A DNA stretch of 64,000 nt, from positions 124,001 to 188,000 of the IMG/VR virus record IMGVR_UViG_3300033995_001164; one strand, given 5' to 3'. The translations under genes were made by a program, and so were the position numbers. Below, piece after piece: positions 12,108 through 52,928 of the stretch. Below the pieces are notes generated by a model. The model ran no database searches. It saw nothing but the letters and a program-made list of their open reading frames with translations, and was not told where the DNA came from. How positions within the stretch are numbered: position 1 is the stretch's first letter; each line of letters starts with the position of its first letter.

Positions 12108-15100
12108 TTAAATATTCTCGAACGAAGCTCCTGTTGGAGTAATGAAGAATTCAATATCGATGAACTCTAATGCTTTCGTCGGTTTTAAGTAAATTTTACC
12201 TGTTAAAGTATTTCTATCTAAATCCTCAGGTGAAGATGAAACAGTTACACGGAAATCGTATAAACCTCTATCTCTTCTAATTGAGTCTAAGATTGGGTTA
12301 ACACTATCTAAGAATTGTTGTCTAACAATTTGGTCGTTTTGTTCAAACAATAATCTTACAGCCACCGCTGAAATCAACTTACGAGCTTGAAGTAATAATC
12401 TTCTTACATTCAATCTATTAAGTGCCGTATCGGCAATTTGTAATGTTTTATTACCCCAAATTACTGTACCAACATCAGAGAAAGTTGCGATAGGGTTAAT
12501 TCTACCTTGGTACAATGTATCTCTATCTTCTTGAGTTAATTTAACTCTCGCCTTAACTGAGTTTACAAGACCTCTAGTATAACCCGCAGATGCGAACCAT
12601 GGGAAAGCGATGTTATCAGTTAACGCTAAGTTTCTACAAACCTCACCTGTTGCCGGTAAATAAATTTGTGTATTATTTACAGTATCTCTTGTTAAAACCC
12701 AAGGATAATAAGTTGCGGTATAGTTAGAGTCAATTCCGGTATTATCTAAATTATCTACTGATTCTTGAGGATAAATAATATCCTGTGGATTAGTTGAGTC
12801 CGGAGTATACATATTGTAATCCGGAGTTGTTGCAATATAAACTGAATCCGCTCTTTGGTATTGAATCATGTCAATAGTTTCTTCAACTAAGTTAGAGTTA
12901 TTGATGTAGTCAATACTTGATGTTGCAAATACATTAATGTTTGTAGCTTCAGGGTTTCTAAATGTTAGAATACCCAGTAAGTAAGCATAATAGTCGGTAT
13001 TAGCAAAATCTTGAGTGTTATCAGCAACAGTAATTCTTTTAAATAAACCACTTCCGGTTGCGTTAGGGTATCGAGTTGAAGATGATGCTCCCGCTAAAAA
13101 TCCTGATTGACCTAATTGGAATCTATCTTGATTTGTTCTAAATTCTCTATAGATGTCCCAACCGTCGAATCCACCAGCAAAACATACAGTATATTTTCTT
13201 GAGTAGATGAAATAGTATGGATTTTCTTGAGTTTCAGGGTCTGTTCTAAATTCTGCAGTACCACATTCAAATGCAGTTTGACCACTAGTTAATGAACTAT
13301 TTGAAATTGTGACTACGGTTGCACCGGAATCCATGTGGAAACCTTTACTTACATAATTCCAAGACGCCCCTTCAATTGGTTGTGGGGCAATAACCCAAGA
13401 TTCTGGGGTTTGTTTACCTTTGTAAGATAAAAATGATTCGTCAATACCATATTGAGTTGAGAAACCTAAATAAGTTCTTCTAACAATATCACCCGGAGAT
13501 TCTACTGTGTTTGGACCACCGGTTGGTGTACCGAATGGTGGATTAGCAATGGTTTCACCAGGGAAAAAATATTTTGTTTTAAATTTAGGGGTCGGTGATG
13601 GATTTAAAACTGAATCGTATTCTCTTTGAGTATATCCTTCAAACCCACAAGGAATTGCATCAATTGGGGCCTCATCCGCCATTTCAATCATTACGTATTT
13701 TGAAAGTAACGCGTATTCTCCGTTAGTGGAACCAAGTTTCTTAGCAACAAAGTTGTTAGAATTAGGGTCCATATTACAGTTAGTAAATTTTTCAATAACA
13801 ACTGGGTTTGAATCAGTGTCAAAGAAATTTCTAACTAACACATCAAATGTCATATTATTAAATGATAGGTTAGCAATTGAAACTTTAACTTCAGTATTTG
13901 CAGCATCTCCATCTGAGATTGAAACAAATTTAAATAATTTGTAAACTTTATTACCTCTTAATTCTGACACCAAATAAGGTGTACTTGGTGATTGATATTG
14001 ACCTACATTATACGCTATTGATGACGGATTTTCACTTTTAGCATCCGGTAATGCAACTAATTCAGGATTAATACCTTTTATATATCCTTGATTATAAGCG
14101 TATGCCAATGAACCAGGGTAAATCTCTTCAACAAATAAAGGAACCTCATTTCTTGATTTTCCAAAATTATCAACACCTAATACTTTAGTAATAAATTTTG
14201 AAGAAGCAGCAGATAAGTTAGTTTCAAATGTAAAATTATCCCCATCTTTAGTGACACCTGATAAACCAAATGAGGCATAAGGGTTTTTATCAATATCTGC
14301 GTATTGGTCAGTAGATAATAATGTAACATTAGTTAAACCACTTACCTCATAAATTGGTCCATGATTATCACTAGTTGAACTATTAGTATATAATGAAATA
14401 CCTCTTGAACGAAGAGTTGCAACAACCATGTCATTGTATTCAGTATAAGCCGTTCCGGTAAAACTGTAATAATCTCCCGATATAGTTCCCGAAAAACTAT
14501 CGGTTAATCCGGTAGTGATGGAATCAAACGCATAGTTAAATGAATAACCTGAATAAGAGTTACCCGCATAATTATTAAAATTCGCATAGTACCATGAATC
14601 ATTTTGACCGGCAGATAAATCATTATTTGTTAAATTAAGAGAGTCAACACCATATGAATTCACAACAGTACCATATTGACCTATTAAAACATAATAATCA
14701 CTTTCAGGGATTGAACCGTAAGCGATTGCCGTTGTTGCAGACAATGTAGGATTACCAACTAATGTTATTATAGTATTTGTAATGTCGTTATTATATGTTG
14801 ATGTACTTCCATCTGAAAGTCTGTATTGTGTATTAAAGTTAGCCTGAACCACAGTTGGAAATGAACCACTAATAAAATTAACAGTTTCAGCACTGGTTGA
14901 ACCTGTAAAAGATACAGACCAAGATGTTGCACCTGTTGGACTTTGATTTATTGTAGTAGGGTCAACATTTGCAGTAACTCTAATACTCCAAGATGGTCCT
15001 GCATCATATCCTGATAAACCTAAGATTCTTGTAACAAACAATTGGTTTGATTGTTGCAAGTAAGATTTAGCAATATATGCCGCTTCATATTTAGGGATTT

Positions 15101-15320
15101 GTGTGTTAACAAATTTGGTTGGTTCTGTTCCTCCGAAAAAGGCTTGGAATTCGTCATAGTTTGTTATAAATACCGGTTCAAATGCGGGACCTTTTAAAGT
15201 CTCACCAACTAAACCTAAGGTAGTAACACCTACACTTTGTGCTACGAATGATAAGTCAGTTTCTGAAGTGTATACTCCCGGTGAAACGAAAACTTTTTGA
15301 TTTGCTTGTGCTGTTGCCAT
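12108..15320 (-). CDS. Tail sheath protein (T4 gp18-like)
   Basis: 1070 aa; N-terminal FVSPGVYTSETDLS and GLVGETLKGP; C-terminal PWFASAGYTRG, LYQGRINPI, WGNKTLQ, RLNVRRLL, GKIYLKP. Confidence 0.95.
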   Translation of the reverse strand: MATAQANQKVFVSPGVYTSETDLSFVAQSVGVTTLGLVGETLKGPAFEPVFITNYDEFQAFFGGTEPTKFVNTQIPKYEAAYIAKSYLQQSNQLFVTRILGLSGYDAGPSWSIRVTANVDPTTINQSPTGATSWSVSFTGSTSAETVNFISGSFPTVVQANFNTQYRLSDGSTSTYNNDITNTIITLVGNPTLSATTAIAYGSIPESDYYVLIGQYGTVVNSYGVDSLNLTNNDLSAGQNDSWYYANFNNYAGNSYSGYSFNYAFDSITTGLTDSFSGTISGDYYSFTGTAYTEYNDMVVATLRSRGISLYTNSSTSDNHGPIYEVSGLTNVTLLSTDQYADIDKNPYASFGLSGVTKDGDNFTFETNLSAASSKFITKVLGVDNFGKSRNEVPLFVEEIYPGSLAYAYNQGYIKGINPELVALPDAKSENPSSIAYNVGQYQSPSTPYLVSELRGNKVYKLFKFVSISDGDAANTEVKVSIANLSFNNMTFDVLVRNFFDTDSNPVVIEKFTNCNMDPNSNNFVAKKLGSTNGEYALLSKYVMIEMADEAPIDAIPCGFEGYTQREYDSVLNPSPTPKFKTKYFFPGETIANPPFGTPTGGPNTVESPGDIVRRTYLGFSTQYGIDESFLSYKGKQTPESWVIAPQPIEGASWNYVSKGFHMDSGATVVTISNSSLTSGQTAFECGTAEFRTDPETQENPYYFIYSRKYTVCFAGGFDGWDIYREFRTNQDRFQLGQSGFLAGASSSTRYPNATGSGLFKRITVADNTQDFANTDYYAYLLGILTFRNPEATNINVFATSSIDYINNSNLVEETIDMIQYQRADSVYIATTPDYNMYTPDSTNPQDIIYPQESVDNLDNTGIDSNYTATYYPWVLTRDTVNNTQIYLPATGEVCRNLALTDNIAFPWFASAGYTRGLVNSVKARVKLTQEDRDTLYQGRINPIATFSDVGTVIWGNKTLQIADTALNRLNVRRLLLQARKLISAVAVRLLFEQNDQIVRQQFLDSVNPILDSIRRDRGLYDFRVTVSSSPEDLDRNTLTGKIYLKPTKALEFIDIEFFITPTGASFENI

Positions 15321-18670: not shown

Positions 18671-21559
18671 ATGGATGTAAGTCTCGAGTCAAAAGCATTG
18701 TCCTTATTGGAAACCTATGAAGGTGGTAATAACTACCTTATTGAATTAAAACGAAAGTCACAATTAAATAGAAAGTTTTACCCAACAAGGAGTCAATCAG
18801 AATACATAATTAACAATCACGATAAACAACCCAAAGTTGCCAAGAAATGGGTAATTCTTGATACCTACTTCGCACAGAAACTTGCGGATGATAAATTGTA
18901 TACTGAAATACCACAAAAGGTATGGGTTGAGAAATTATTATCGGATAAAGAAAAAGCGTATCATATTTGGGGTAGAGTATTTGAAACCGAAGAGTTCCAT
19001 CATTTTTGGTTACCTAAAGCGGCAATCATTAAAGATAACACCGTTAAAAACGTTGTAATTGATTATTCAAAATACTCTAATCGTCCTCCTCTTGAACATC
19101 AAAAAGAAGCCGTCCAAAAATTAGTTGAGAATAAGAAGTTTATTCTTGCTGACGATATGGGGTTGGGTAAAGCTGAATTTGTTGAGAATAAAGTATTTAC
19201 CCCATATGGTAGAAAAAGAATTGGAGATTTAGAAATTGGTGATGAAGTTATTGGTAGTGATGGTAAGAAATGTAATGTTCAAGGTGTTTATCCTCAAGGA
19301 ATTAAAGATTTATATAGAGTAACATTTAACGATGGAGTTTCTGTCTTAGTCTGTAAAGAACATTTATTTTCTGTTAGGGCGCGAAGTTTTGGTCATAATA
19401 CTAAAAATTCTCGTAATAAAAAAAACATTGTTTTATCTATTGGTCAAATGATTGATGAAGAATTATTTTTAGAAGTCTCAGGTGAGAAAAATAATATTAA
19501 TAGAAATTATAAATTTAAAACTTATTTTAAGGAAAAAGGAGGTAATAGTAAGTGGCAAATACCTATTGTTAAACCAATTGAATTTGTTGATAATGAAATC
19601 CCGGTAAATCCTTATTTACTTGGGTTAATTTTAGGTGATGGAGGTATCAGTCAAAAAAGTATTATGTTTAGTTCCGCAGATGATGAAATCATAGAATATA
19701 TTAAAGAATTATTACCTGAAAATACTCAAATAATTAAAAAGAAAAATACTAAATATGATTATTCCATTACAAAAAAAAATGGTCACAATAATCCTATCAC
19801 ACAAATTCTTAAAAATTTAAATTTAATGGGTTGTACTTCTCATAATAAATTTGTCCCGGATTGTTTTAAATATACCTCAATTGAAAATAGATTAGAAATT
19901 TTAAAAGGTTTAATGGATACTGATGGAACTTGTTGCCTCAATAAAAAAGGAAATTTTGAAGGGACTGAATTTTCAACTGTATCGGAAAGATTATGTGATG
20001 ATGTTATTGAAATCGTACATAGTTTAGGTGGTATTGCCAAAAAAAAAAGTAGAACAACTAACTATACATACAAGGGTGAAAAAAAAGAAGGTAAAAAATC
20101 TTATAGAGTTAACATAAAATTACCATCAGGGATGAATCCATTTAAACTTAAAAGAAAATACGATTTATACAATACTCCCGAAAAATATAAGGTTGGTAGA
20201 TATATTAAAGATATTAAATTTGAGGGTAATGGTGAGGCTATTTGTATTTCAGTAGATTCTCCTGATAAATTATATGTAACTGAACACGCAATTGTTACAC
20301 ATAACACAACTTCTACCATTATTGCCGCTTTAGAAACGGGAGCGAAGAAAATTTTAATTATTTGTCCCGCAACTCTTAAAATTAACTGGAAAAGAGAAAT
20401 TGAAAATTATTCGGATAGAAGTATCTATATCTCAGAAGGAAAACAATTTAGTACCGAAGATGATTTTGTTATCGTTAATTACGATATTATGAAGAATTTT
20501 CACGACCCAAAAAAGAAAGATGATTCTTTAATCTTAATGTCAAAATTTGATTTAATTATTATTGATGAAGCTCATTATATTAAAAATGCTCAAGCTCAAC
20601 GAACAAAACTTATTAATGACATTACAAAAAGTGTTGATAGGTTGTGGTTATTAACTGGTACACCAATGACTTCCCGTCCAATCGATTATTTTAATTTACT
20701 TAGTTTAATTGATTCACCTGTAGCCAAGAATTGGATGGCATATGTTATTCGTTATTGTTCTGGTTTTCAATTTAAAGTTGGTCCAAGAAAAATTTGGAAT
20801 GTTCAAGGGGCATCTAATCTTGAAGAATTACGAGATAGAACTGCAGGTCTTACTTTGAGAAGGTTGAAAGAAAATGTTTTAGATTTACCAGATAAAATTA
20901 TTACTCCGGTTTACTTAAGATTAAAGTCTAAACTTTATGAAGAAGTAATGGGTGATTATTACAATTGGTATGAAAAGAACCCTGAAGAATCAAAATCCTT
21001 AACAGTTCAATTCACAAAACTTACTAAAATTCGTCAAATTATTGCAGATGAAAAAATTACTCAAACAATAGAAATTGCGGAAAATATTATCGAACAAGAT
21101 AAAAAAGTCATAATTTTTTGTAACTTTACCGATTCATTAAATAAAATTACAGAACATTTTGGAAAAGCGGCGGTTAAACTCGATGGTTCAATGTCTAAAG
21201 TTGAGAGACAATTCAGTGTGGACCAATTCCAAGAAAATGATAAGATAAAAGTATTTGTCGGTAATATTAAAGCTGCCGGTGTTGGTATTACATTGACATC
21301 TGCTGAAGCGGTAATTTTTAATGATTTATCGTTTTTACCTTCCGACCATGCACAATCAGAAGACCGGGCATATAGATATGGACAAAAAAACAACGTATTA
21401 GTTTATTACCCAATTTTTGAAAATACAATTGAGGGAATTATCTACGACATACTTCATAATAAGAAACAAGTGATTGCAACCGTCATGGGAGATAATCAAA
21501 ATACTGCTGACGCAGCTGAAGAAATTATGACAAAAATTAATAGTTTAAGAAAAAAATAA
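18671..21559 (+). CDS. SNF2/SF2 helicase containing an intein
   Basis: Walker A LADDMGLGK|T interrupted by an intein; DEAH box, LTGTP, and helicase-C motifs QSEDRAYRYGQ. Confidence 0.92.
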   Translation: MDVSLESKALSLLETYEGGNNYLIELKRKSQLNRKFYPTRSQSEYIINNHDKQPKVAKKWVILDTYFAQKLADDKLYTEIPQKVWVEKLLSDKEKAYHIWGRVFETEEFHHFWLPKAAIIKDNTVKNVVIDYSKYSNRPPLEHQKEAVQKLVENKKFILADDMGLGKAEFVENKVFTPYGRKRIGDLEIGDEVIGSDGKKCNVQGVYPQGIKDLYRVTFNDGVSVLVCKEHLFSVRARSFGHNTKNSRNKKNIVLSIGQMIDEELFLEVSGEKNNINRNYKFKTYFKEKGGNSKWQIPIVKPIEFVDNEIPVNPYLLGLILGDGGISQKSIMFSSADDEIIEYIKELLPENTQIIKKKNTKYDYSITKKNGHNNPITQILKNLNLMGCTSHNKFVPDCFKYTSIENRLEILKGLMDTDGTCCLNKKGNFEGTEFSTVSERLCDDVIEIVHSLGGIAKKKSRTTNYTYKGEKKEGKKSYRVNIKLPSGMNPFKLKRKYDLYNTPEKYKVGRYIKDIKFEGNGEAICISVDSPDKLYVTEHAIVTHNTTSTIIAALETGAKKILIICPATLKINWKREIENYSDRSIYISEGKQFSTEDDFVIVNYDIMKNFHDPKKKDDSLILMSKFDLIIIDEAHYIKNAQAQRTKLINDITKSVDRLWLLTGTPMTSRPIDYFNLLSLIDSPVAKNWMAYVIRYCSGFQFKVGPRKIWNVQGASNLEELRDRTAGLTLRRLKENVLDLPDKIITPVYLRLKSKLYEEVMGDYYNWYEKNPEESKSLTVQFTKLTKIRQIIADEKITQTIEIAENIIEQDKKVIIFCNFTDSLNKITEHFGKAAVKLDGSMSKVERQFSVDQFQENDKIKVFVGNIKAAGVGITLTSAEAVIFNDLSFLPSDHAQSEDRAYRYGQKNNVLVYYPIFENTIEGIIYDILHNKKQVIATVMGDNQNTADAAEEIMTKINSLRKK
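19172..20305 (+). mobile_element. 378-aa intein with LAGLIDADG endonuclease (Ala1, class 3-like)
   Basis: Starts AEFVENKVF after GLGK and ends IVTHN before Thr+1. LAGLIDADG motifs LLGLILGDG and LKGLMDTDG; block F AICISVD has Cys at F4. Confidence 0.92.
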
Positions 21560-24752: not shown

Positions 24753-27467
24753 TTATTTTATATATTCTTCCCACCCTTCTTCCGCCAAATCATAAATGTA
24801 ATCAGGGCTAACACCAACTCTGTCCCAAAATTTTAGTTCTAAGTCTGTAATTTCTAATAACTCCTCCACAGTGTCTTGGTCACCATCTTTTAACGGATTC
24901 CCACTAATTAATTCACATTGAGACTTGGTAAATATACCTCTTTTTTCAGGTTCATTGACTAATAAATTATTTCTGACCTCATCTTGAAATACAACCATTA
25001 GTGGTAATAGTTTTTTATTGAAAGTAACAACAGCCCTTGCGACATTATAATCACCTTTTAAATCAGGGTTATCCGTTAGAATATCTTTATCTAATAAATA
25101 ACAATTCAATTGAACCCCGTCATTCTTTTTTTGTACATCTCCATGAGAAGCTCTTAACCCATTGTTAACATACATAATAACATCACCCAAATTAACTTTT
25201 AAGTTTTCTTGTATTGCTAATTCCAAATGAGCCATGCGTGACATACTATTTCCAGATTTTGTTTTAGTCGTCAATCGTTTCTTATAATCATCTAACGATA
25301 ATTTAACTCTAGCCCTTTGAGCAATTTTACTTAATGAAATTTCTTTATTATAAATCTTTTGTAGGTATTCATAGTAATATTCAACAAACCCCTGACCATT
25401 ACCCTCTAATAATAATTTAACACCTTTGTCTAAAAATTCCTCAATATATAAAGGTAGTTTTTTAGATTTAATTGAATTTCCGGTTAGTTTAATTTTACCA
25501 TTAGTTTCCATTACGGCATAATTTTTTCGAGCGAGATTAATACAACTCACCCAAGTTCCGTCACAGTCTAAGGCCATTTCACCTTTTTGGAAAATATCGT
25601 TATATTCAGCAACATCGGCGTAATAACCCTCATAAACTTTATCTTTTTTTACTTTCCAATTTAACCCTTTACCAATATATCTACGAGTTTCAACTCCATC
25701 GGGGATTGTAAAGTTCATACCATCAGTATCGCAAACCAAAGAAGTATAACCTTTTTTGGTAAAAAACTTTAACATCTGTCTTAAATATTGTCTACCGGTA
25801 CAGGTAATTTTTTCACCCTTATTCATATCTCCCCAAGCGTATACTTGTGGAGCCGATAAAGCACCAAATAACGAATTAATGAAAATCTTAATTGGTAACT
25901 GCTTATTACCATATGACTCAGATTTTGCTTTGTCTGTTTCATAAAACTCCTCAGCTAATTGTTTATATTTGATACGAGTATTACGGAAATAGGTTAACAT
26001 ACCTTTCATTGCTCCCGTAACATCACAATCAGGAAATACATCGTGTACCAATTGAATTGAGGGATATAGGGAGCTAAAGTCAAGTTTTAGTACATTCTTA
26101 CTATAACCAACTTTTAAGAGTCTTGAAAGACCCCCTACGAAGTCAGTCTTAGGTTCTTTAACTGGAATGGCTAAATTATATTTATATGACCACGCTAAAA
26201 GTAACATTCTCCACAGACTTGCAGTACCCATTGTTGAAACCCTTTCATATGTTGTTGGAATCATTGCCGCCAATAAGAATGAACCTTGGTTGAACTCTTG
26301 GTCAACTTTAAGGGTTTCATCTAAGTCATCGTCAAGATACATCTCTACTAACTTATCTCCACTAGTTTTCTCGTAAGTATCAATTCGTCTTTTACATATT
26401 TCATCAATCTTAGGGTCAACACCAACTTTCTTGTAATTACCATTAGTAGTGTTTAACCAAAAATCTTCCTTGTTGGCATAAAATGGACCAATGTCTAAGT
26501 GGTCAATGTAAACACGACTTGGAGATTCCGCATTAATGTATTTGGTGATATATTTTAAACCAGCCGCTTTAATACTTGAGTTGATTGCTTGAGCCCTACG
26601 AACCGCATGGATAATATCAATAACGTTATAACCCCAAATAGAAGTTTGAGTATAAGTCTCAACCTCATTAGCCAATTTTAACATACCATCTTTACGAGTA
26701 TAAGAATGGTTAGGGTTTAATGATTTACATACCTTTTTCAAATCAATCCCCAATATTTTACTTCTTTCAAATATCCAATGCCAGTCAAAGTTTGCCGAGT
26801 TATATCCACCAATAATTGATGGCTTAAGTTCATTGATTACTTTAAAAAATTCAATGATTGCCCCCTTTTCTTCGTTTTCATCAGTACACTCAATCACTCT
26901 ATGGAATCCTTTATTGGTTTTGATTCCAATCATAAAGATACGACCATCCTTAGGTTCAAGGGAGGTCGTCTCCAAGTCATAAACCATTCGAGTAACCTCG
27001 TTATAGTTTTCAAACCCTTTGAATAATCTTTTTTCTTTGGATACAAGGTATTGTTCCACCGGAGATAAAAGAGTTATTTTATCCTTGGCTTTATCACCCC
27101 ATGGGTCACATCCTCCATCTCTAAAGAATTGGATAAGTTCTCTATATCCTTTCATGGATTTAACCAAATAGGTTAAGCCCTTTTCAAGACGTTCATTTCC
27201 ATGAGTTTCCAATTTCTCAATCAGAATTCCATACTTGGACATGGCTTCTTTCTGAGCAGCCCTTGAATCGTTATAAAATTTTAGTTGTTTTAAATCACCC
27301 ACCCAAGCGAACGGGGTAAAAGTGTCTTTACGGATTTCTTTTCCTTTGCCAGGAACTTCACGTACTTTGTAAATACAGTTGTCTCGGTAGTCATACTCGA
27401 TGGCAACTATAAATTCTTCCGGGTCATTTCCGTGGAGGAATGACTCAATTTCTTTACTGTCTATCAT
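24753..27467 (-). CDS. Family B DNA polymerase
   Basis: 904 aa; Exo motifs YDLET and GYNSANFD; Pol motifs DFSSLYPS, KIFINSLFG and CDTDG. Confidence 0.95.
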   Translation of the reverse strand: MIDSKEIESFLHGNDPEEFIVAIEYDYRDNCIYKVREVPGKGKEIRKDTFTPFAWVGDLKQLKFYNDSRAAQKEAMSKYGILIEKLETHGNERLEKGLTYLVKSMKGYRELIQFFRDGGCDPWGDKAKDKITLLSPVEQYLVSKEKRLFKGFENYNEVTRMVYDLETTSLEPKDGRIFMIGIKTNKGFHRVIECTDENEEKGAIIEFFKVINELKPSIIGGYNSANFDWHWIFERSKILGIDLKKVCKSLNPNHSYTRKDGMLKLANEVETYTQTSIWGYNVIDIIHAVRRAQAINSSIKAAGLKYITKYINAESPSRVYIDHLDIGPFYANKEDFWLNTTNGNYKKVGVDPKIDEICKRRIDTYEKTSGDKLVEMYLDDDLDETLKVDQEFNQGSFLLAAMIPTTYERVSTMGTASLWRMLLLAWSYKYNLAIPVKEPKTDFVGGLSRLLKVGYSKNVLKLDFSSLYPSIQLVHDVFPDCDVTGAMKGMLTYFRNTRIKYKQLAEEFYETDKAKSESYGNKQLPIKIFINSLFGALSAPQVYAWGDMNKGEKITCTGRQYLRQMLKFFTKKGYTSLVCDTDGMNFTIPDGVETRRYIGKGLNWKVKKDKVYEGYYADVAEYNDIFQKGEMALDCDGTWVSCINLARKNYAVMETNGKIKLTGNSIKSKKLPLYIEEFLDKGVKLLLEGNGQGFVEYYYEYLQKIYNKEISLSKIAQRARVKLSLDDYKKRLTTKTKSGNSMSRMAHLELAIQENLKVNLGDVIMYVNNGLRASHGDVQKKNDGVQLNCYLLDKDILTDNPDLKGDYNVARAVVTFNKKLLPLMVVFQDEVRNNLLVNEPEKRGIFTKSQCELISGNPLKDGDQDTVEELLEITDLELKFWDRVGVSPDYIYDLAEEGWEEYIK

Positions 27468-45544: not shown

Positions 45545-46306
45545 ATGGATACTAAAATTAAAAATAAGATAATTAAAGAATATCTAAAAGGTAAGGGTTC
45601 TACAACAATTGAGAGGGAATTAAAAGTTTCAAAAAAAACAATATTATTAATTCTTAACAATGAAGGTATTGTTAGAAAAAGAGATAGATGCAATTCTTTA
45701 AATATTGTGAAATCCGAAAATTATTTTATAGTTAATCGAATATGCCCTATATGCAACAAAAATGTTGAAACTAAATCAATAGATAGGGCAATTGCCTGTA
45801 GGAACCATTATAGAAAAATTAATAATAATACTCCTTGTAAGACATGTTCTATAAAATTACAAACAGGTGAGGGAAATCCATTTTACGGAAAAAAACACAC
45901 AAAAGAATCTCTTAATAAATTGTCAAAAACATTATCGGACAACCCAAGAAAATTTAGTTCATCGTCAAAACCCGAAAAACAAATTGAAAAAATTATTAAA
46001 GGTCTTGGGTATGAGGTTAAGAGAACATATAAAGTCAATGAATATATTTGTGATATCTACATACCTAAATTTAATCTAATAATTGAATATAATGGGGATT
46101 ATTGGCATTGTAATCCAAATAAATATGATTCTAATTATGTCCACCCTCATAAGAAAAAACCCTCATCTCAAATATGGTGTGAGGATAAAATAAGAATTGA
46201 CAACATCATTGATTATGATTATAATTTGGAAGTGGTTTGGGAATCTAATTTTAATGAAAAAACCACAATTCAAAATATAATTAAAAAATATGAAACAAAA
46301 AATTAA
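45545..46306 (+). mobile_element. Free-standing Vsr/DUF559-like homing endonuclease with NUMOD3 motif
   Basis: 253 aa; GEGNPFYGKKHTKES (NUMOD3); KPEKQI...CDIYI...IIEYNGDYWH...DKIR...VVWES. Confidence 0.8.
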
Positions 46307-47507
46307 TGTTGTAGTAATACCCAGCGATAAAAGTGGAGTTGGAAAATTTCGTTCTGTTGACCCTCATGTCTTTCTTCAAAATCTTTATAAAGATGAATTT
46401 CATATCGATATCGTCTATGACCCACCATACGATGATATGAACTTTTGGAAACAATATCAAATAGTTTCATACCATAGGAGTATTGGAGCAGATTTTGAAA
46501 GAGCAAACGCCCTTATCAGAATTTTAAACTCCATGGGTATTGTTACTGTTTGTGATATTGACGATTATTGGATGCCGGGTAAAGAACACCCAATTCACGA
46601 TATTATTAAATTTAATAAAATAAATGAAAAAATTGTCGAGAATCTTAAGGTTTCAAAATACGTTACAACAACAACAACTTTATTTGCGGATGAAATTAAA
46701 AAAATAAATAAAAATGTTTTTGTAATCCCCAACGCGATAAATCCAAATGAACCACAATTTAAAGAACCAACATTAGAGTCAGATAGATTGAGAATTGGTT
46801 GGTTAGGCGGTTCATCTCACTTACATGATTTAGATATTTTAAATCCATCATTTGGTAAATTAGCACAACACAAAGATAAATTACAATATGTTCTTTGTGG
46901 ATTTGATGTTAGGGGAACTGTCACAGAAATCAATTCTCAAACAGGGGAGCACGTAAAAAGAGATATTAGACCGGAAGAAACAGTTTGGGCTCAATATGAA
47001 AAGATTTTTACACAGAATTACGGAAATATTTCTGAAGAATACAAAAAACATTTAGTAAATTATAATACTAATTCGTTTCCGGATGAAATGACTGAATCAT
47101 ACTTAAGAGTTTGGACTAAACCAGTTACATCTTATGCTAAGAATTATTCAAAATTTGATGTATCTTTGTCTCCAATTAAGAATCATATGTTTAATAGAAT
47201 GAAATCTCAATTAAAAGTTATTGAGGCGGGATTCTATAAAAAGGCGTTAATCGCGTCTAACATTGGACCATACACTCTTGATTTGAAACATTGTTTAAAA
47301 AATGGGGAATTTGTTGATGGAAATGCGATGTTAGTTGATGAGGTTAGAAACCATTCTGATTGGGCAAAATGTATTGAAAAACTGATGAAGAACCCTAATT
47401 TAGTTAAAGATATGGGGGAAAGATTATATGAAACCGTTAAAGACAGATACGATTTGAATATAGTAACAAAAGATAGAAGAGATTTTTACTTAAGCATTAT
47501 TAAATAA
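46290..47507 (+). CDS. GT-B (GT4-like) glycosyltransferase
   Basis: 405 aa; RIGWLGGSSH, FDVSLSPI...KSQLKVIEAG...LIASNIGPY. Confidence 0.8.
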   Translation: MKQKINVVVIPSDKSGVGKFRSVDPHVFLQNLYKDEFHIDIVYDPPYDDMNFWKQYQIVSYHRSIGADFERANALIRILNSMGIVTVCDIDDYWMPGKEHPIHDIIKFNKINEKIVENLKVSKYVTTTTTLFADEIKKINKNVFVIPNAINPNEPQFKEPTLESDRLRIGWLGGSSHLHDLDILNPSFGKLAQHKDKLQYVLCGFDVRGTVTEINSQTGEHVKRDIRPEETVWAQYEKIFTQNYGNISEEYKKHLVNYNTNSFPDEMTESYLRVWTKPVTSYAKNYSKFDVSLSPIKNHMFNRMKSQLKVIEAGFYKKALIASNIGPYTLDLKHCLKNGEFVDGNAMLVDEVRNHSDWAKCIEKLMKNPNLVKDMGERLYETVKDRYDLNIVTKDRRDFYLSIIK

Positions 47508-47508
47508 T

Positions 47509-48210
47509 ATGATAAACATTCCATTAAATAAGATTTTATTTTTAGATATTGAAACCGTTGGGATTGAACCCACTTGGGAATCGTTATGTACGAATAGACC
47601 GGAACTTTCCTTTCAGTTTGAAAAATATTTTGATTGGTTTCAAAAAAGGTTCCCCGAAGATGCCGATGAAGGTCCGGGAAAAATGTTTGTTAATCGGGCA
47701 GCACTAGTCCCTGAATTCTTAAGAATTGCTTGTGTTAGTGTTGCCTTTATTGGGCCTGATGGTGAAACAAAAATGCAGTCATTTAGTAATCTTGATGAAA
47801 AAGAATTACTAATAGATGTTCAAAAAATGCTTTATCGTACCGGTGAATTAGGGTTTTTTCTTTGCGGACATAATGTTAAAGGTTTTGATATTCCTGTTCT
47901 TGCTAAAAGAATGATAATGAATGGGTTACTACCTCCAAAAATTTTACCAGGTCACGATACTAAACCTTGGGAAATTAAAGCTCTTGATACTAAAGAAGTG
48001 TGGCAATATGGTGGTTATGGGTCAATTGCCTCATTAGAGTTAATGTGTGTGTGTTTAGGTGTTGAATCGTCTAAAAATATGGAAGTAACAGGAAATAAAG
48101 TTCATGAAGCCTTTTGGATTAAAAAAGACATTAAAGGTATTGTAGAATACTGCGAAAAAGATGTTGAGGTACTAGTGGAAGTAATTAAAAAATTAAAAGA
48201 ATTAAAATAA
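47509..48210 (+). CDS. Stand-alone PolB-type 3'-5' exonuclease
   Basis: 233 aa; DEDDy motifs FLDIET, GHNVKGFD and YCEKD. Confidence 0.85.
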   Translation: MINIPLNKILFLDIETVGIEPTWESLCTNRPELSFQFEKYFDWFQKRFPEDADEGPGKMFVNRAALVPEFLRIACVSVAFIGPDGETKMQSFSNLDEKELLIDVQKMLYRTGELGFFLCGHNVKGFDIPVLAKRMIMNGLLPPKILPGHDTKPWEIKALDTKEVWQYGGYGSIASLELMCVCLGVESSKNMEVTGNKVHEAFWIKKDIKGIVEYCEKDVEVLVEVIKKLKELK

Positions 48211-48926
48211 TGGGAGGATTTGATGGTTTAGATGGTTTAGGGTTTGACCCTGAAATATTAAATGATATTCAAAATCATTTTAAAAAAATACAGGAAGAAT
48301 CAGGTGTTGAGATTGACGAAGACGACGAATACCAAAAAGAGTTGGAAGAATTGATTGGTATGACGTATGAGGAGATGAACGAAGACGCGTTAAAAGCAAT
48401 TAAGACTAAAAATTTAAAAGTGGAATTATTAAATGAGGATGCGAAGTTTCCTGAATACGCTTACCCAAGTGATTCAGGATTTGACCTATTTTCGACGGAA
48501 GAAGTTATTCTACCTCCATTTGGTCGGGGATTAGTCCCAACAGGTATTAAATTATCAATCCCTGATGAATTTGAAATACAAGTAAGACCAAAAAGCGGTT
48601 TAGCGATTAATCAAGGTTTAACAGTATTAAATACTCCCGGAACTGTAGATTGTTTCTCTGAGGATATGAAAATACTTACAGTTGATGGTGAGAAATTATT
48701 ATCGGAATTAAAAATAAACGATGTTGTTTTTTCAGTTAATGAAAAAACTTTTGAGATTGAAAAAGATGTCGTATCCAACATATTTGATACAGAAACTCAA
48801 GAAGTTCTTATTATTGAAACGGAATTAGGTGTGCTAGAAGTCACACCAAATTCCGAGGTATATACGACTAACGGAATTATTTTAGCCAAAAATTTAAAAG
48901 AAAATGATGAAATTATAATCTTTTAA
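48210..48926 (+). CDS. dut: dUTPase N-terminal half fused to split-intein N fragment
   Basis: dUTPase motifs SGFDL, RPKSGLA and TPGTVD, then Cys (48651) begins a 91-aa IntN (CFSEDMKILT...LAKNLKENDEI). Confidence 0.9.
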   Translation: MGGFDGLDGLGFDPEILNDIQNHFKKIQEESGVEIDEDDEYQKELEELIGMTYEEMNEDALKAIKTKNLKVELLNEDAKFPEYAYPSDSGFDLFSTEEVILPPFGRGLVPTGIKLSIPDEFEIQVRPKSGLAINQGLTVLNTPGTVDCFSEDMKILTVDGEKLLSELKINDVVFSVNEKTFEIEKDVVSNIFDTETQEVLIIETELGVLEVTPNSEVYTTNGIILAKNLKENDEIIIF

Positions 48927-48938
48927 TCACCAGTATAC

Positions 48939-48960
48939 TATCTATCAATAAAGATAGATA
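48939..48960 (+). promoter_or_regulatory. Hairpin immediately upstream of endonuclease start
   Basis: Perfect 8-bp stem TATCTATC-AATAAA-GATAGATA ending 6 nt before ATG 48967. Confidence 0.45.
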
Positions 48961-48966
48961 TAGAGT

Positions 48967-49854
48967 ATGTCGGTAAAATGTCAAATATGCGGGGTTGAGA
49001 AAGAATACTCAATAGTGGAACACTTAAAGTACGAACACAAAATAACCTCAAAAGAATATAAAGAAAGGTTTCCTAAATCTAATGTTAAGTCAGTTGAATT
49101 TTTTAAAATGAATTCAAATAATATGAAGTCAAAATGGTCGGAACCTGAGTTTAAAGAAAAGATGAAAATTTCAAGAAAAATTTCACATAATAAACCAGAA
49201 TTTATTGAAAAAATGAGTGAAATTGTGAAAAAAAAACACAAGGAAACTCCTGAAATTTACTCCGGTTTTACATCGTGGTCTAAAAGTGAAAGGTTTAAAG
49301 AATGGGTTAAATCTGAAGAAAGAATTAAAAAAATATCAAAAAGTTCAAAAGAAAGATGGGAAGATGATGATTATCGAAAAAGAACTATACAAACAATTAA
49401 AGAGAGATTAAATGATGGGAGATGTCAAAAAAGTGACGATTTTAAAGAAAAAATGTCGGAGATAATATCAAAATTATATAGTTCAGGTAAGTTCTCTAAT
49501 GACAGTAATAGATATAAAACAGGAACATACACATCAAATAAACAAGAAACTTTTTATTATTCATCATCATACGAGTTAGATTCTATGAAGTTTTTGGACT
49601 CTATAGATTATGTTAAAACATGGACAAATAAACACGGAATAAGAATCAAATATTATTATAATAATATGAATAGATACTATATTCCTGATTTCTATGTTGA
49701 ATTAGAAAATGGTAATAAATTTATTATTGAAATGAAGGGATGGGAAACCGAAGAAGTTTTAATTAAACAAAAATATACATTAAAACAATACCCAAACTAT
49801 AAACTATTTTATTCAGTCGACGATTTAAAAAAATTCATATATGAAAACAAGTAA
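48967..49854 (+). mobile_element. Free-standing endonuclease (C2H2 finger, NUMOD3-like repeats, TnsA-like PD-(D/E)XK head)
   Basis: 295 aa; CQIC...H...H; KEKMKIS, EKMSEI and KEKMSEI repeats; SSYE...YIPDFYV...IIEMKG. Confidence 0.8.
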
Positions 49855-50146
49855 AATTAAAAAAATCACCAAAACGGAAAAACAAACTTATGATATAACA
49901 GTAAAAAACAATCATAATTTTTTTTGTAATAAACATCTAATACACAATTGTGGTTATAATGGAGAAATTAAAGTAATCGTCTTCAACACAAATAATATAA
50001 CAAAATCAATCCCTAAAGGGACAAAAATCGCTCAAGCAGTTTTATGTCCAGTGGTTAATGGAAAATATGTCAACTTAATTCAAGTTGATTCAATAACTGA
50101 AGGGGAACGAGGAAATAACGGATTTGGGTCAACAGGTTTAATTTAA
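49841..50146 (+). CDS. dut: Split-intein C fragment fused to dUTPase C-terminal half
   Basis: 36-aa IntC MKTSKIKKI...TYDITVKNNHNFFCNKHLIHN (to 49948), then C+1 GYNGEI, KIAQAVL and RGNNGFGSTG (dUTPase motifs 3-5). Confidence 0.9.
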   Translation: MKTSKIKKITKTEKQTYDITVKNNHNFFCNKHLIHNCGYNGEIKVIVFNTNNITKSIPKGTKIAQAVLCPVVNGKYVNLIQVDSITEGERGNNGFGSTGLI

Positions 50147-50153
50147 AACAATC

Positions 50154-50717
50154 ATGAAAATAATACAGTTAGGAACAAATGATGGCCAGGATGATTTAAC
50201 AAAAATAGTTATGTCGTATAAACCATCGGACATTGAACTTTTGGTTTTAGTTGAACCTCAAGAAATTTTTAATAGTAGTATTAAAAATATATATCAAGAT
50301 TATAATTTTAATATTGAAAATAAAATTATAAATTTAGACGAAAGTAAAAAATCTGAAATTTTTTATACTTGTATTCATAAACATTTAAGCAGTTTAAAAA
50401 AAGAAAACATTGAAAATCATGGTTTAGGTGTTCCAATATCAGAGGTTGTTTACGAATCAATAACATTGAATGAGTTATTTGAAAAATATAATGTGGTTGA
50501 TTTGGATATTTTATTTGTTGATGTTGAAGGTATGGACGACAAAATAATATCAAGTATTGATTTTAATAAAGTTTCTATAAAACAAATTTACTACGAATTT
50601 TCTCACATAGATGACGAATCTTTTATTAATTTTTTAAATACAAGGGGATATGAAGTCCATAAAAATATTTTTTATAATGGATATACCAATTTGGCAACTA
50701 AAAAATGTAATTTATGA
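50154..50717 (+). CDS. FkbM-family methyltransferase
   Basis: 187 aa; IIQLGTNDG, LVEP, ITLNELFEKY..DILFVDVEG. Confidence 0.8.
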   Translation: MKIIQLGTNDGQDDLTKIVMSYKPSDIELLVLVEPQEIFNSSIKNIYQDYNFNIENKIINLDESKKSEIFYTCIHKHLSSLKKENIENHGLGVPISEVVYESITLNELFEKYNVVDLDILFVDVEGMDDKIISSIDFNKVSIKQIYYEFSHIDDESFINFLNTRGYEVHKNIFYNGYTNLATKKCNL

Positions 50718-51445
50718 AAATATCGTTAGTTTGTATTGCGAAAAATGAGGATAATTATATTCAGGAATGGATTAATTATCATTTAAAATTAGGGTTTGAT
50801 AATATTTTTATTTACGAAAATGATTGGGACTCAAAAATTGAAAATCATAAAGTCACTAAATACCCTGTTGTGGGAGTTAAACAACAAATTCCCGTCTATA
50901 ATGAGTTTATTTCAAAACATAAAAACAGTTATGATTGGGCAGCGTTTTTAGATGTTGATGAGTTTTTGGTATTAAAAAAACATAAAACAATTCACGAATT
51001 TATTGAGGACTACAAAGACAATGATTCTATTGGGGTTAATTGGGTTTTGTTCGGTGACAATAATTTAACTAAAAGTGACGACTACGGAATGATTAATCGT
51101 TTTACAATGAGACAAAATTCACCAAATCACCACATTAAATCAATAATTAATTTAAAAAATGCTGGATATATGTCGGTACATAACCATAGTGGTAAATGTG
51201 TTGATACCAATTATAAAAGAATTGACAATTCACCATTTAATTATAATGGACCTATAGATGTCGCACAAATAAATCATTATTTTTGTAAAACAAAAGATGA
51301 GTTTATCGAGAAATTAAATAGGGGTAGGGCCGACAATGGAACACATAGAGACATTTCCGATTTTAACGACAATAATTTCAATGAAATTGAAGACTTAACA
51401 GCAATGAACTTTTTATATGATAACAATAATTTACTCAACACATAA
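50714..51445 (+). CDS. GT2/GT92-like glycosyltransferase
   Basis: 243 aa; CIAKNEDNYIQEWINYHLKLGFD, AFLDVDEF, INHY. Confidence 0.8.
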   Translation: MKISLVCIAKNEDNYIQEWINYHLKLGFDNIFIYENDWDSKIENHKVTKYPVVGVKQQIPVYNEFISKHKNSYDWAAFLDVDEFLVLKKHKTIHEFIEDYKDNDSIGVNWVLFGDNNLTKSDDYGMINRFTMRQNSPNHHIKSIINLKNAGYMSVHNHSGKCVDTNYKRIDNSPFNYNGPIDVAQINHYFCKTKDEFIEKLNRGRADNGTHRDISDFNDNNFNEIEDLTAMNFLYDNNNLLNT

Positions 51446-52928
51446 AGACGAAATTTATAATAACAAATTTAGACAACATTTGTTACAAAGTTCCGGGCTA
51501 AAAGATATTCAAATATTAGAATACATTAATCACAATCAATATAGTTTATCTGAATTATACAATAGAGGTATATCCGAATCAGAAAACGACATCATTGTAT
51601 GTTGTCATAACGATATAAAACTTGAAAATGGTTGGGGTAAAAAATTACTTAATGATTTTGATAAAAATCCTGATTATGGGATTATAGGTAAAGCTGGTTC
51701 TTGTTATTTTCCGGAATCCGGAATTTATTGGGAAAAAATGCGTCAGACAATGGTTGGTCAAGTTTATCATCACCCTGAAGGTCGGAAAAAATGGTTAAAT
51801 ACTTATTCATCAAAATTACCGTATTTAATCCCTGTCGTAACTATTGATGGATTATTTATATCGTTTAATAAATTAAAAGTTAAGAACCAATTTGATGAAA
51901 CAATTGGTAAATTTCACTTTTATGACCATTTATTTTGTATACCAAATTATTTAGACGGTGTTAAAATTGGTGTAACCTCATCATTTGAAATTACTCATGA
52001 ATCCGTAGGACAACCGAATCAAGAATTTTTTGAATCAAAAGATAAATTTATTTTAAAGTGGGGAAAAAAATTACCCTTAGATTTGAAACCTGAAAAAATA
52101 TATGTCCCCGAAATTAAAGAAAAACCAATTAAAAATATTGGTAAAGTTGCCATTATTATTCCGACCAAAAGTAAATTAGATTTATTATTACCTTGTATCG
52201 AATCATTTTACGAACATTGTAACGAAAATTTATTTGAAATATTCATATCAGACACTGGTTCATCAGAAGAAGAAAAAAATGAAATTAAAAATTTTATTTC
52301 ATTTAAACAAAACATAAAGTTAATTGAATATGATTATTACAATTTTGCGAAAATAAATAATGATGTCGTTAAAAATCATTTAACTGACTCTCATGAGTTC
52401 ATTTTATTTTGTAATAATGATATTAAGGTTTGTAATAATGCGATTTACGGAATGTTAAAAATCTTCAAAGAAAATAAAAAAGTTGGGACCGTAGGTGCTA
52501 GACTTCACTTTAAAGATAATACAATACAACATGGAGGTATTACAATGTTAATTAATGGTAATAATATTTTAGGTGTCACCCATAATAATTTAGGTAGTTA
52601 CTATGGTGATTCGATTAGTAAGAAAACTATTCTCGGAAGTACCGGAGCGTTATTAATGATAAAAAAGATAGTATTTGAACAATCCGGATATTTTAACGAA
52701 AATTACATCAATTGTTTTGAAGATGTTGAATTAAATTTAAAAACTAACTTGTTAGGCTACTCTAATGTGTATGACGGAAATATAGTTGCGTATCACTATG
52801 AAAGCAGTACAAGAAATGAAGATGAAGATAATATAAAAAAATTAATGTCAGATTACCACAATAATTTATTACCATTCATAATTAAACATTTTAATCATTT
52901 AAAAGATAAAATTCAAATTATTAATTAA
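51417..52928 (+). CDS. Two-domain GT2-type glycosyltransferase
   Basis: 503 aa; CCHNDI and FHFYD in domain 1; IIIPTK, FCNNDI, TGALLMI...FEDVEL in domain 2. Confidence 0.8.
   Translation: MITIIYSTHKDEIYNNKFRQHLLQSSGLKDIQILEYINHNQYSLSELYNRGISESENDIIVCCHNDIKLENGWGKKLLNDFDKNPDYGIIGKAGSCYFPESGIYWEKMRQTMVGQVYHHPEGRKKWLNTYSSKLPYLIPVVTIDGLFISFNKLKVKNQFDETIGKFHFYDHLFCIPNYLDGVKIGVTSSFEITHESVGQPNQEFFESKDKFILKWGKKLPLDLKPEKIYVPEIKEKPIKNIGKVAIIIPTKSKLDLLLPCIESFYEHCNENLFEIFISDTGSSEEEKNEIKNFISFKQNIKLIEYDYYNFAKINNDVVKNHLTDSHEFILFCNNDIKVCNNAIYGMLKIFKENKKVGTVGARLHFKDNTIQHGGITMLINGNNILGVTHNNLGSYYGDSISKKTILGSTGALLMIKKIVFEQSGYFNENYINCFEDVELNLKTNLLGYSNVYDGNIVAYHYESSTRNEDEDNIKKLMSDYHNNLLPFIIKHFNHLKDKIQIIN

Follow-up and report, generated by a model that had tools for sequence, protein, structure and literature searches.

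An apparent fractured dut gene in an uncultured jumbo phage, with a split intein and a TnsA-like endonuclease at the active-site motif of dUTPase

How is a dUTPase obtained from a phage gene that is broken in the middle of a catalytic motif? The question is raised by a locus in 64,000 nucleotides of IMG/VR virus record IMGVR_UViG_3300033995_001164 (positions 124,001 to 188,000 of that record; the whole of this stretch is called the window below). The source genome is that of an uncultured tailed jumbo phage from freshwater, and the window contains a tail sheath gene (12108-15320) and a family B polymerase gene (24753-27467). The dut gene is located in two separate open reading frames (ORFs); the first ends with the N-terminal part of an intein (IntN), the second begins with the C-terminal part (IntC), and an endonuclease gene is found between them. 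The locus is probably a 'fractured gene', i.e., a composite mobile element in dut that comprises a split intein and a homing-type endonuclease, and in which trans-splicing would restore the dUTPase.

The 5' ORF (48210-48926, 238 residues) encodes the N-terminal part of the dUTPase (N-extein) followed by 91 residues of IntN. The 3' ORF (49841-50146, 101 residues) starts with 36 residues of IntC, followed by the cysteine at position +1 and the remaining dUTPase (C-extein). The two ORFs have the same orientation and are 915 nt apart. The endonuclease ORF overlaps the IntC ORF by 14 nt, with the start codon of the latter inside the former, and the three ORFs occupy three different reading frames. 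Cys1 of IntN is encoded at 48651-48653, IntC ends in His-Asn at 49948, and the +1 Cys is encoded at 49949-49951. In the N-extein, an acidic N-terminal extension of approximately 60 residues precedes motifs 1 and 2 and the first half of motif 3; the C-extein carries the second half of motif 3 (GYNGEI) and motifs 4 and 5. The two exteins together thus provide all five dUTPase motifs, among them motif 3 with its Asp and motif 5 with GFGSTG. The gene is broken directly after ...LNTPGTVD. The residue at -1 is the motif 3 Asp, by which the catalytic water is activated in dUTPases, and the element therefore occupies the dUTPase active site, as is usual for inteins. Along the 143 positions of TIGR00576 the match of the 5' ORF (E 2e-20) ends at position 82 and that of the 3' ORF (E 9e-14) begins at position 83, so that the two pieces are exactly complementary; each half alone scores under the NCBIfam cut-off for the whole protein, as expected for halves. 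A preliminary description of the window had proposed a dut gene split by IntN and IntC between the halves of motif 3, with an endonuclease ORF of 295 residues that overlaps the start of IntC. Its coordinates are exact, as judged from the ORFs and the complementary profile coverage. The features of the locus are summarized in Table 1.

Table 1. Features of the split dut locus in the window. dN/dS, ratio of nonsynonymous to synonymous substitution rates, given as the median over 120 pairs from 16 loci, with synonymous sites near saturation.
Feature	Position	Strand	Basis of assignment	Median dN/dS
dUTPase N-extein	48210..48650	+	PF00692 E 1.6e-9; TIGR00576 positions 2-82	0.24
IntN, 91 residues, then stop codon	48651..48926	+	HINT/intein profile matches; DnaB mini-intein and family alignments	0.14
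Conserved RNA hairpin in 40-nt spacer	48935..48968	+	Folding and consensus structure across loci	
Free-standing homing-type endonuclease (putative), 295 residues	48967..49854	+	Alignment of 31 homologues; AlphaFold2; Foldseek	0.25
IntC, 36 residues	49841..49948	+	Intein_splicing profile positions 121-155; gp41-1 intein 6qaz E 5e-5	0.16
dUTPase C-extein, +1 Cys to stop codon	49949..50146	+	PF00692 positions 71-129; TIGR00576 positions 83-142	0.26

The sizes of the two intein fragments lie within the published ranges for IntN (88-105 residues) and IntC (33-54 residues), in line with the resemblance to known pairs that had been noted beforehand. Among solved structures, IntC is best matched by the gp41-1 split intein (Table 1) and IntN by the DnaB mini-inteins 4o1r and 1mi8 (E about 5e-4). 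Of the features that define a class 1 intein, block A, block F, block G and the +1 nucleophile are present; the block B His is not (see below). Cys1 of block A is found in all 29 dUTPase-hosted IntN sequences. In an alignment of 111 C-halves, that of the window included, the block F residues D18 and H25 are kept in 110 and 109 sequences, respectively, and H35 and N36 in 110. IntN is acidic with a net charge of -13 (family median -9), and IntC is basic with +6 (family median +4). Electrostatic pairing of oppositely charged halves has been described for natural split inteins (PMC2677866). A further cysteine in the block F region of IntC, Cys29 (49925-49927, ...NFFCN...), is kept in 109 of the 111 C-half clusters; in the most distant loci (L015, L038 and L041) this position is Ala.

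Close relatives with the gene order exonuclease, dut, glycosyltransferase have an uninterrupted dut of 209-218 residues. The intein-free allele reads ...PGTVD-S-GYNGEIKV..., which is the exact empty site in both the protein and the DNA alignment: in the split allele IntN follows straight after that Asp, and IntC stands straight before a Cys that replaces the Ser. The +1 residue is Ser in 103 of 103 intein-free clusters, i.e., those found among the best 120 matches of the N-half, and Cys in 110 of the 111 split C-halves. Diverged split relatives with 56-82% identity were also recovered by the N-half search. The search with the C-half yielded 247 clusters, and 110 of the best 120 have the size of a C-half (90-110 residues). 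An exhaustive search with IntN alone returned 254 HINT-bearing proteins at E≤1e-3; among the representatives, one per cluster at 50% identity, at least 35 are N-halves of a dUTPase with this IntN at the end.

The three-gene layout is widespread. Relatives of the endonuclease form 72 clusters, all unannotated, and every full-length relative with readable context sits between the IntN and the IntC of a split dut (more than 30 distinct loci). The layout is retained where the identity of the endonuclease drops to 32-34%, and also in loci with quite different neighbour genes, including one on a contig of 617 kb. A split allele without endonuclease, of the gp41-7 type, was not found in these more than 30 loci, a sample biased by the fact that most of them were fetched via the endonuclease; loci fetched via the C-half likewise carry it. 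Two kinds of dut allele in related contigs had been considered in the preliminary description, and only the intein-free kind was found; a contiguous dUTPase intein is absent from the best 150 of the 254 IntN matches. The closest contiguous relative of IntN, P0208 (316 residues), has two tandem HINT domains, at 88-217 and from about 223. This one contiguous candidate for an ancestor lies in a host protein that belongs to no recognisable family. In deposited phage genomes IntN has no match, and matches at the DNA level are limited to short stretches of the dUTPase core in Bacteroides phages.

In the N-extein tree the window allele groups with the intein-free P0013 as its sister, nested within the clade of the 103 intein-free clusters. 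Its N-extein is 94-97% identical to intein-free alleles (96-97% for P0013, depending on counting). Two further split alleles nest separately in the intein-free clade, and the deeper clades are all split. The well-supported branches of the tree force at least four changes of state. On the extein tree, dut alleles that are nearly identical differ in whether they carry the cassette; this is the pattern of a homing element, and the dut cassette fits a mobile, selfish element of the homing type.

In an alignment of 31 homologues, the endonuclease begins with a zinc-finger-like motif (C-x2-C...H-x4-H). A helical region at approximately 43-173 contains repeated ...W...(F/Y)K.KM units, and in the C-terminal domain E203, WTNKHG, P240-D241 and E255-x-K257 are invariant in the 31 sequences. 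The AlphaFold2 model is confident, with a mean predicted local distance difference test score (pLDDT) of 88.8. The top PDB matches of this model in Foldseek are three TnsA chains (1t0f, 1f1z; probability 1.0, E 5e-4 to 2e-3, about 125 columns); Vsr is absent from the list, and other PD-(D/E)XK nucleases follow far behind TnsA. Weak profile matches were obtained to DUF1064, TnsA_N, the C-terminus of the restriction enzyme BPTD_3080, and Hjc. The Pfam family TnsA_N (Tn7_TnsA-like_N) reached 16.9 bits, under its cut-off of 26.5, and no Pfam match to GIY-YIG or Vsr was observed. As the search of the PDB at the sequence level with the endonuclease profile gave just a weak match to Hjc, which falls on the PD...ExK motif, the relationship to TnsA is visible only by fold search. 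No transposition genes are located near the locus. Judged from the model, the enzyme has the fold and the catalytic signature of TnsA, but is predicted to be neither TnsA proper nor Vsr-like. The earlier assignment to a TnsA-like PD-(D/E)XK nuclease, not a Vsr-like one, is borne out by the Foldseek result and by an hhalign comparison with the Vsr/NUMOD3-like endonuclease encoded elsewhere in the window (45545-46306), which returned a probability of 1%, i.e., no relationship. Deposited phages contain only distant relatives of the endonuclease (25-34% identity), namely free-standing 'endonuclease' genes of Bacillus phages.

The gene at 45545-46306 (+), two genes upstream of dut, encodes a second free-standing endonuclease of the homing type, with a NUMOD3 match (E 1e-6) and weak matches to Vsr, MTES_1575 and DUF559, corresponding to the Vsr-like family of Dassa 2009 (PMC2677866). 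It is polymorphic: loci L001, L003 and L017-19 have it, and L002 and L013, which are syntenic, lack it.

The spacer ahead of the endonuclease start is conserved, with a length of 33-40 nt, and a hairpin folds in it in 17 of 17 loci examined. In the window the inner stem pairs 48939-48946 with 48953-48960, and the outer stem extends into the start codon of the endonuclease. The 3' arm of the hairpin spans a stretch rich in purines, and in the window it also takes in the beginning of the ATG. The consensus hairpin has 11 pairs, one of them with a compensatory change from C-G to U-A. More distant loci have a different spacer sequence, with the hairpin still present. A Shine-Dalgarno-like core was identified upstream of only one of the 46 large ORFs in the window, and the leaders are A/T-rich. 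Scarce Shine-Dalgarno motifs and A/T-rich leaders suggest a host with Shine-Dalgarno-independent initiation, such as Bacteroidota. Because the leaders of this phage are otherwise unstructured, A/T-rich and devoid of Shine-Dalgarno motifs, translation of the endonuclease is probably depressed by a stable hairpin at its start. In the published fractured genes a hairpin precedes the endonuclease in 15 of 16 loci, and the endonuclease overlaps IntC by 6-69 bp in 15 loci (PMC2677866).

The following course of events is proposed. The halves bearing IntN and IntC would be translated separately. The acidic IntN and the basic IntC would associate and fold into one HINT domain, in which the first splicing step would be activated without the block B His by some compensating mechanism. 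Trans-splicing of the exteins would then yield a full-length dUTPase in which the catalytic Asp is followed by Cys, not Ser, and the active trimer would assemble from three spliced chains. The endonuclease, its translation kept low by the hairpin, would cut intein-free dut alleles of co-infecting relatives, and repair would copy the entire IntN-endonuclease-IntC cassette into the cut allele (homing).

Several observations weigh against this proposal. One is found in block B of IntN, where Thr-x-x-His reads TPNS in the window, i.e., the Thr is present and the His is replaced by Ser. The preliminary description did not include this feature. The alignment with the DnaB mini-intein sets the Ser opposite the His of TGNH, and the placement is not in doubt, since the neighbouring residues are identical (TPN[H/S]EVYT) in a family alignment of 108 sequences. 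All 75 related inteins from other hosts have His at this position, but none of the 29 dUTPase-hosted IntN, most of which have Thr (76%) or Ser; the block B Thr is kept in 90% of the dUTPase-hosted sequences. The block B His is described as conserved above every other residue of inteins, and many inteins depend on it (PMC6333167). With this residue replaced by Ser or Thr, the active site of the dUTPase IntN is not that of a canonical class 1 intein. In addition, both intein pieces match the HINT/intein profiles under the curated whole-domain cut-offs of Pfam and NCBIfam, as is expected for fragments. A third point concerns homing. The C-extein of the window has an identity of 0.84-0.87 to its nearest intein-free relatives, compared with a median of 0.95 and a 5th percentile of 0.85 for the baseline expected from the N-extein identity, and the differences are grouped approximately 45-55 residues past the junction, with none adjacent to it. 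As they do not lie beside the junction, the divergence gives at most weak support to co-conversion of the flanks.

Absence of the block B His throughout the clade is what would be seen if splicing had been lost and the intein halves served only to dimerise with high affinity, keeping the dUTPase pieces together non-covalently. Charge complementarity would suffice for binding alone, and a precedent exists in NrdA of phage Aeh1, which is fractured by an endonuclease and assembled via interaction domains (PMC3045599). However, binding needs none of Cys1, the terminal Asn, the penultimate His, the block F Asp and His and the +1 Cys, all of which are 98-100% conserved over more than 100 clusters. 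The nucleophile is evidently maintained, with Ser at +1 in the intein-free alleles and Cys in 110 of 111 split alleles, and an unspliced HINT domain of 127 residues would directly follow the catalytic Asp of motif 3. Non-covalent reconstitution is accordingly considered unlikely. Trans-splicing is the preferred reading: because all other catalytic residues are strictly conserved, the clade presumably still splices, through a compensating mechanism.

Natural inteins without the block B His form a very small subset, the Tko CDC21-1 orthologues, and in engineered inteins a bulky residue at -1 can make up for the absent His (PMC6333167). In the dUTPase-hosted sequences the residue at -1 is Asp in 29 of 29 cases, and D39, I44, G48 and a Gly at -4 are conserved positions specific to the clade. 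One may speculate that the dUTPase split inteins are a mechanistically distinct clade in which the N-terminal junction is activated without the block B His, maybe via the Ser/Thr at this position and/or the Asp at -1, but this more specific proposal is tentative. Should it be true, the clade would provide a natural example of extein-assisted splicing and more than 100 clusters of diverse split-intein pairs, maybe orthogonal to the DnaE, gp41-1 and NrdJ-1 tools. Work on splicing without the block B His has so far relied mostly on mutants and a single small archaeal group.

It was also suggested in the preliminary description that the split gates the activity of the dUTPase. The enzyme would then be active only under certain conditions, set for instance by when the C-half is translated, in coupling with the endonuclease ORF, or by the redox state of Cys1 and Cys+1. 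The start of the C-half inside the endonuclease ORF, together with the hairpin in the endonuclease leader, could indeed link the expression of the three products. On the other hand, near-identical phages thrive with an uninterrupted dut (the 103 intein-free clusters described above), and presence and absence are distributed as in a selfish element. Fractured genes of unrelated hosts have the same hairpin and overlap; these control elements are thus features of the endonuclease, not of dut regulation. The suggestion found no support, and a regulatory role of the split appears improbable.

In the case in which dut had been killed by insertion of the endonuclease, the intein pieces would be functionless remnants of a decaying gene, and the host's own dUTPase might compensate for the interrupted one. 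The dN/dS values (0.14-0.26 over the five segments, Table 1) indicate purifying selection on all five, most strongly on the intein halves; with their lower ratios, these appear to be constrained at least as much as the enzyme that they interrupt. The ORFs are intact and all five dUTPase motifs are kept in all loci examined. A dead gene is very hard to reconcile with these data.

The locus is metagenomic in origin, and recoding of stop codons occurs in some large phages (PMC7886860). An N-half identical to that of the window is recorded on 41 contigs and an identical C-half on 43, with contigs of up to 315 kb and from many samples, and the whole identical endonuclease gene on six IMG/VR viral contigs of 6-309 kb. 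As the exact proteins recur on more than 40 contigs from many samples, the locus is neither a product of chance nor of the misassembly considered in the preliminary description. A scan of 47500-51000 against Rfam at E≤1 detected no intron or other RNA family, which speaks against a group I or group II intron carrying the endonuclease. The stop codon of the IntN ORF varies among relatives between TAA, TGA and TAG and is thus a genuine stop, not a recoded sense codon; together with the three reading frames, this rules out read-through into one contiguous intein. An artefact or another kind of interruption is therefore the least credible explanation of all.

Other mobile or variable elements were observed in the window and in its relatives. 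A helicase of the SNF2 family (18671-21559, +) is interrupted in motif I (...DDMGLGK/A...THN/T..., with slashes at the junctions) by a contiguous intein that includes a homing endonuclease of the LAGLIDADG type (matches to Hom_end_hint, LAGLIDADG_3 and Hom_end). This intein has Ala as its first residue instead of the usual Cys or Ser, Cys at the position of the block F Asp (...AICISV...) and Thr before His-Asn, a combination reminiscent of class 3 inteins, for example that of Deinococcus Snf2. Downstream of dut, at 50154-52928, the window encodes an FkbM methyltransferase, a GT92 protein and a glycosyltransferase of 503 residues; at the same place the relatives L002, L003, L013 and L017 have a single glycosyltransferase of 541 or 633 residues. 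The glycosyltransferase cassette downstream of dut looks like a variable region. In a distant locus (L058:533-3520), a gene adjoining the split dut encodes a class II ribonucleotide reductase with an intein that bears a LAGLIDADG domain. In these phages, genes of nucleotide metabolism seem to gather mobile elements.

Protein ligation relies mainly on natural split inteins, of which few exist, so that each new efficient and orthogonal pair is of practical value. In full-text literature searches, with subscription journals and intein databases outside their coverage, no split intein or any intein tied to a dUTPase host was found, in agreement with the initial impression that this host is unreported; dUTPase is not mentioned in two intein surveys. 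The locus would add a ninth host enzyme and a third endonuclease family to the fractured-gene class. Fractured dut is abundant (247 C-half clusters, with 111 C-half-sized sequences aligned from the best 120) and spread across jumbo phages, and it represents a further case of selfish elements aiming at the active-site motifs of nucleotide-metabolism enzymes.

Among known systems, the endonucleases of the Bacillus phages HSE3 and Moonbeam resemble that of the window in being free-standing intergenic genes of the homing type, one of them annotated as NUMOD3, but they share 25-34% identity with it and are not located within a split gene. TnsA of Tn7 (1f1z, 1t0f) has the same fold of the nuclease domain and the same E...D...ExK signature; the identity is 13-16%, the nuclease domain alone aligns (about 125 columns, template modelling score about 0.3), and the window locus is without transposon context and without TnsB and TnsC partners. 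The nearest published case with regard to the host enzyme is the intein in the dCTP deaminase of cyanophage vB_AphaS-CL131, which self-excises experimentally (PMC6293099). Here, too, a phage enzyme of the dUTPase/dCTP-deaminase superfamily serves as host; that intein, however, is contiguous, has an internal homing endonuclease domain and interrupts dCTP deaminase. The Tko CDC21-1 orthologues (PMC6333167) are likewise a natural clade that lacks the block B His; that the intein persists nonetheless implies some compensation. They differ in being contiguous and archaeal with Leu at -1, whereas the dUTPase inteins are split and phage-borne, with Ser or Thr in place of the His and Asp at -1.

The gp41-1 split intein (6qaz) resembles the present one in blocks F and G (...NH.F.aN..l.HN), in the split point and in the fragment lengths, and also originates from a phage. 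The likeness in sequence is recognisable only in the C-terminal part. In the gp41-1 intein the +1 residue is Ser and the block B His is present. Its IntN is positively charged (PMC2677866), whereas that of the dUTPase intein is acidic.

The closest likeness is to the fractured genes of Dassa 2009 (PMC2677866), which come from Global Ocean Sampling metagenomes, e.g., gp41-1, NrdJ-1, IMPDH-1 and NrdA-2, and whose hosts are gp41, NrdA, NrdJ, IMPDH, DnaE, DNA ligase, terminase and one unknown protein. There as here, a conserved phage enzyme of DNA or nucleotide metabolism is interrupted at a conserved motif, the 5' ORF closes with IntN, the 3' ORF opens with IntC, and a free-standing endonuclease is placed between them, preceded by a hairpin and overlapping IntC (14 nt here, 6-69 bp there). 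The structural features of the class are thus all found, and the match with known phage split-intein loci that had been proposed at the outset holds. Three differences were noted. The dUTPase is outside the eight published host types; the endonuclease is GIY-YIG or Vsr-like in the published loci and TnsA-like with a zinc-finger-like N-terminus in the window; and the block B His, one of five catalytic residues there, is missing in the dUTPase clade. An endonuclease that is neither GIY-YIG nor Vsr widens the fractured-gene class and does not exclude the locus from it. What is known, then, is the fractured-gene type of element; what is new is the dUTPase host, the predicted TnsA-like PD-(D/E)XK nuclease and the Ser or Thr at the block B position.

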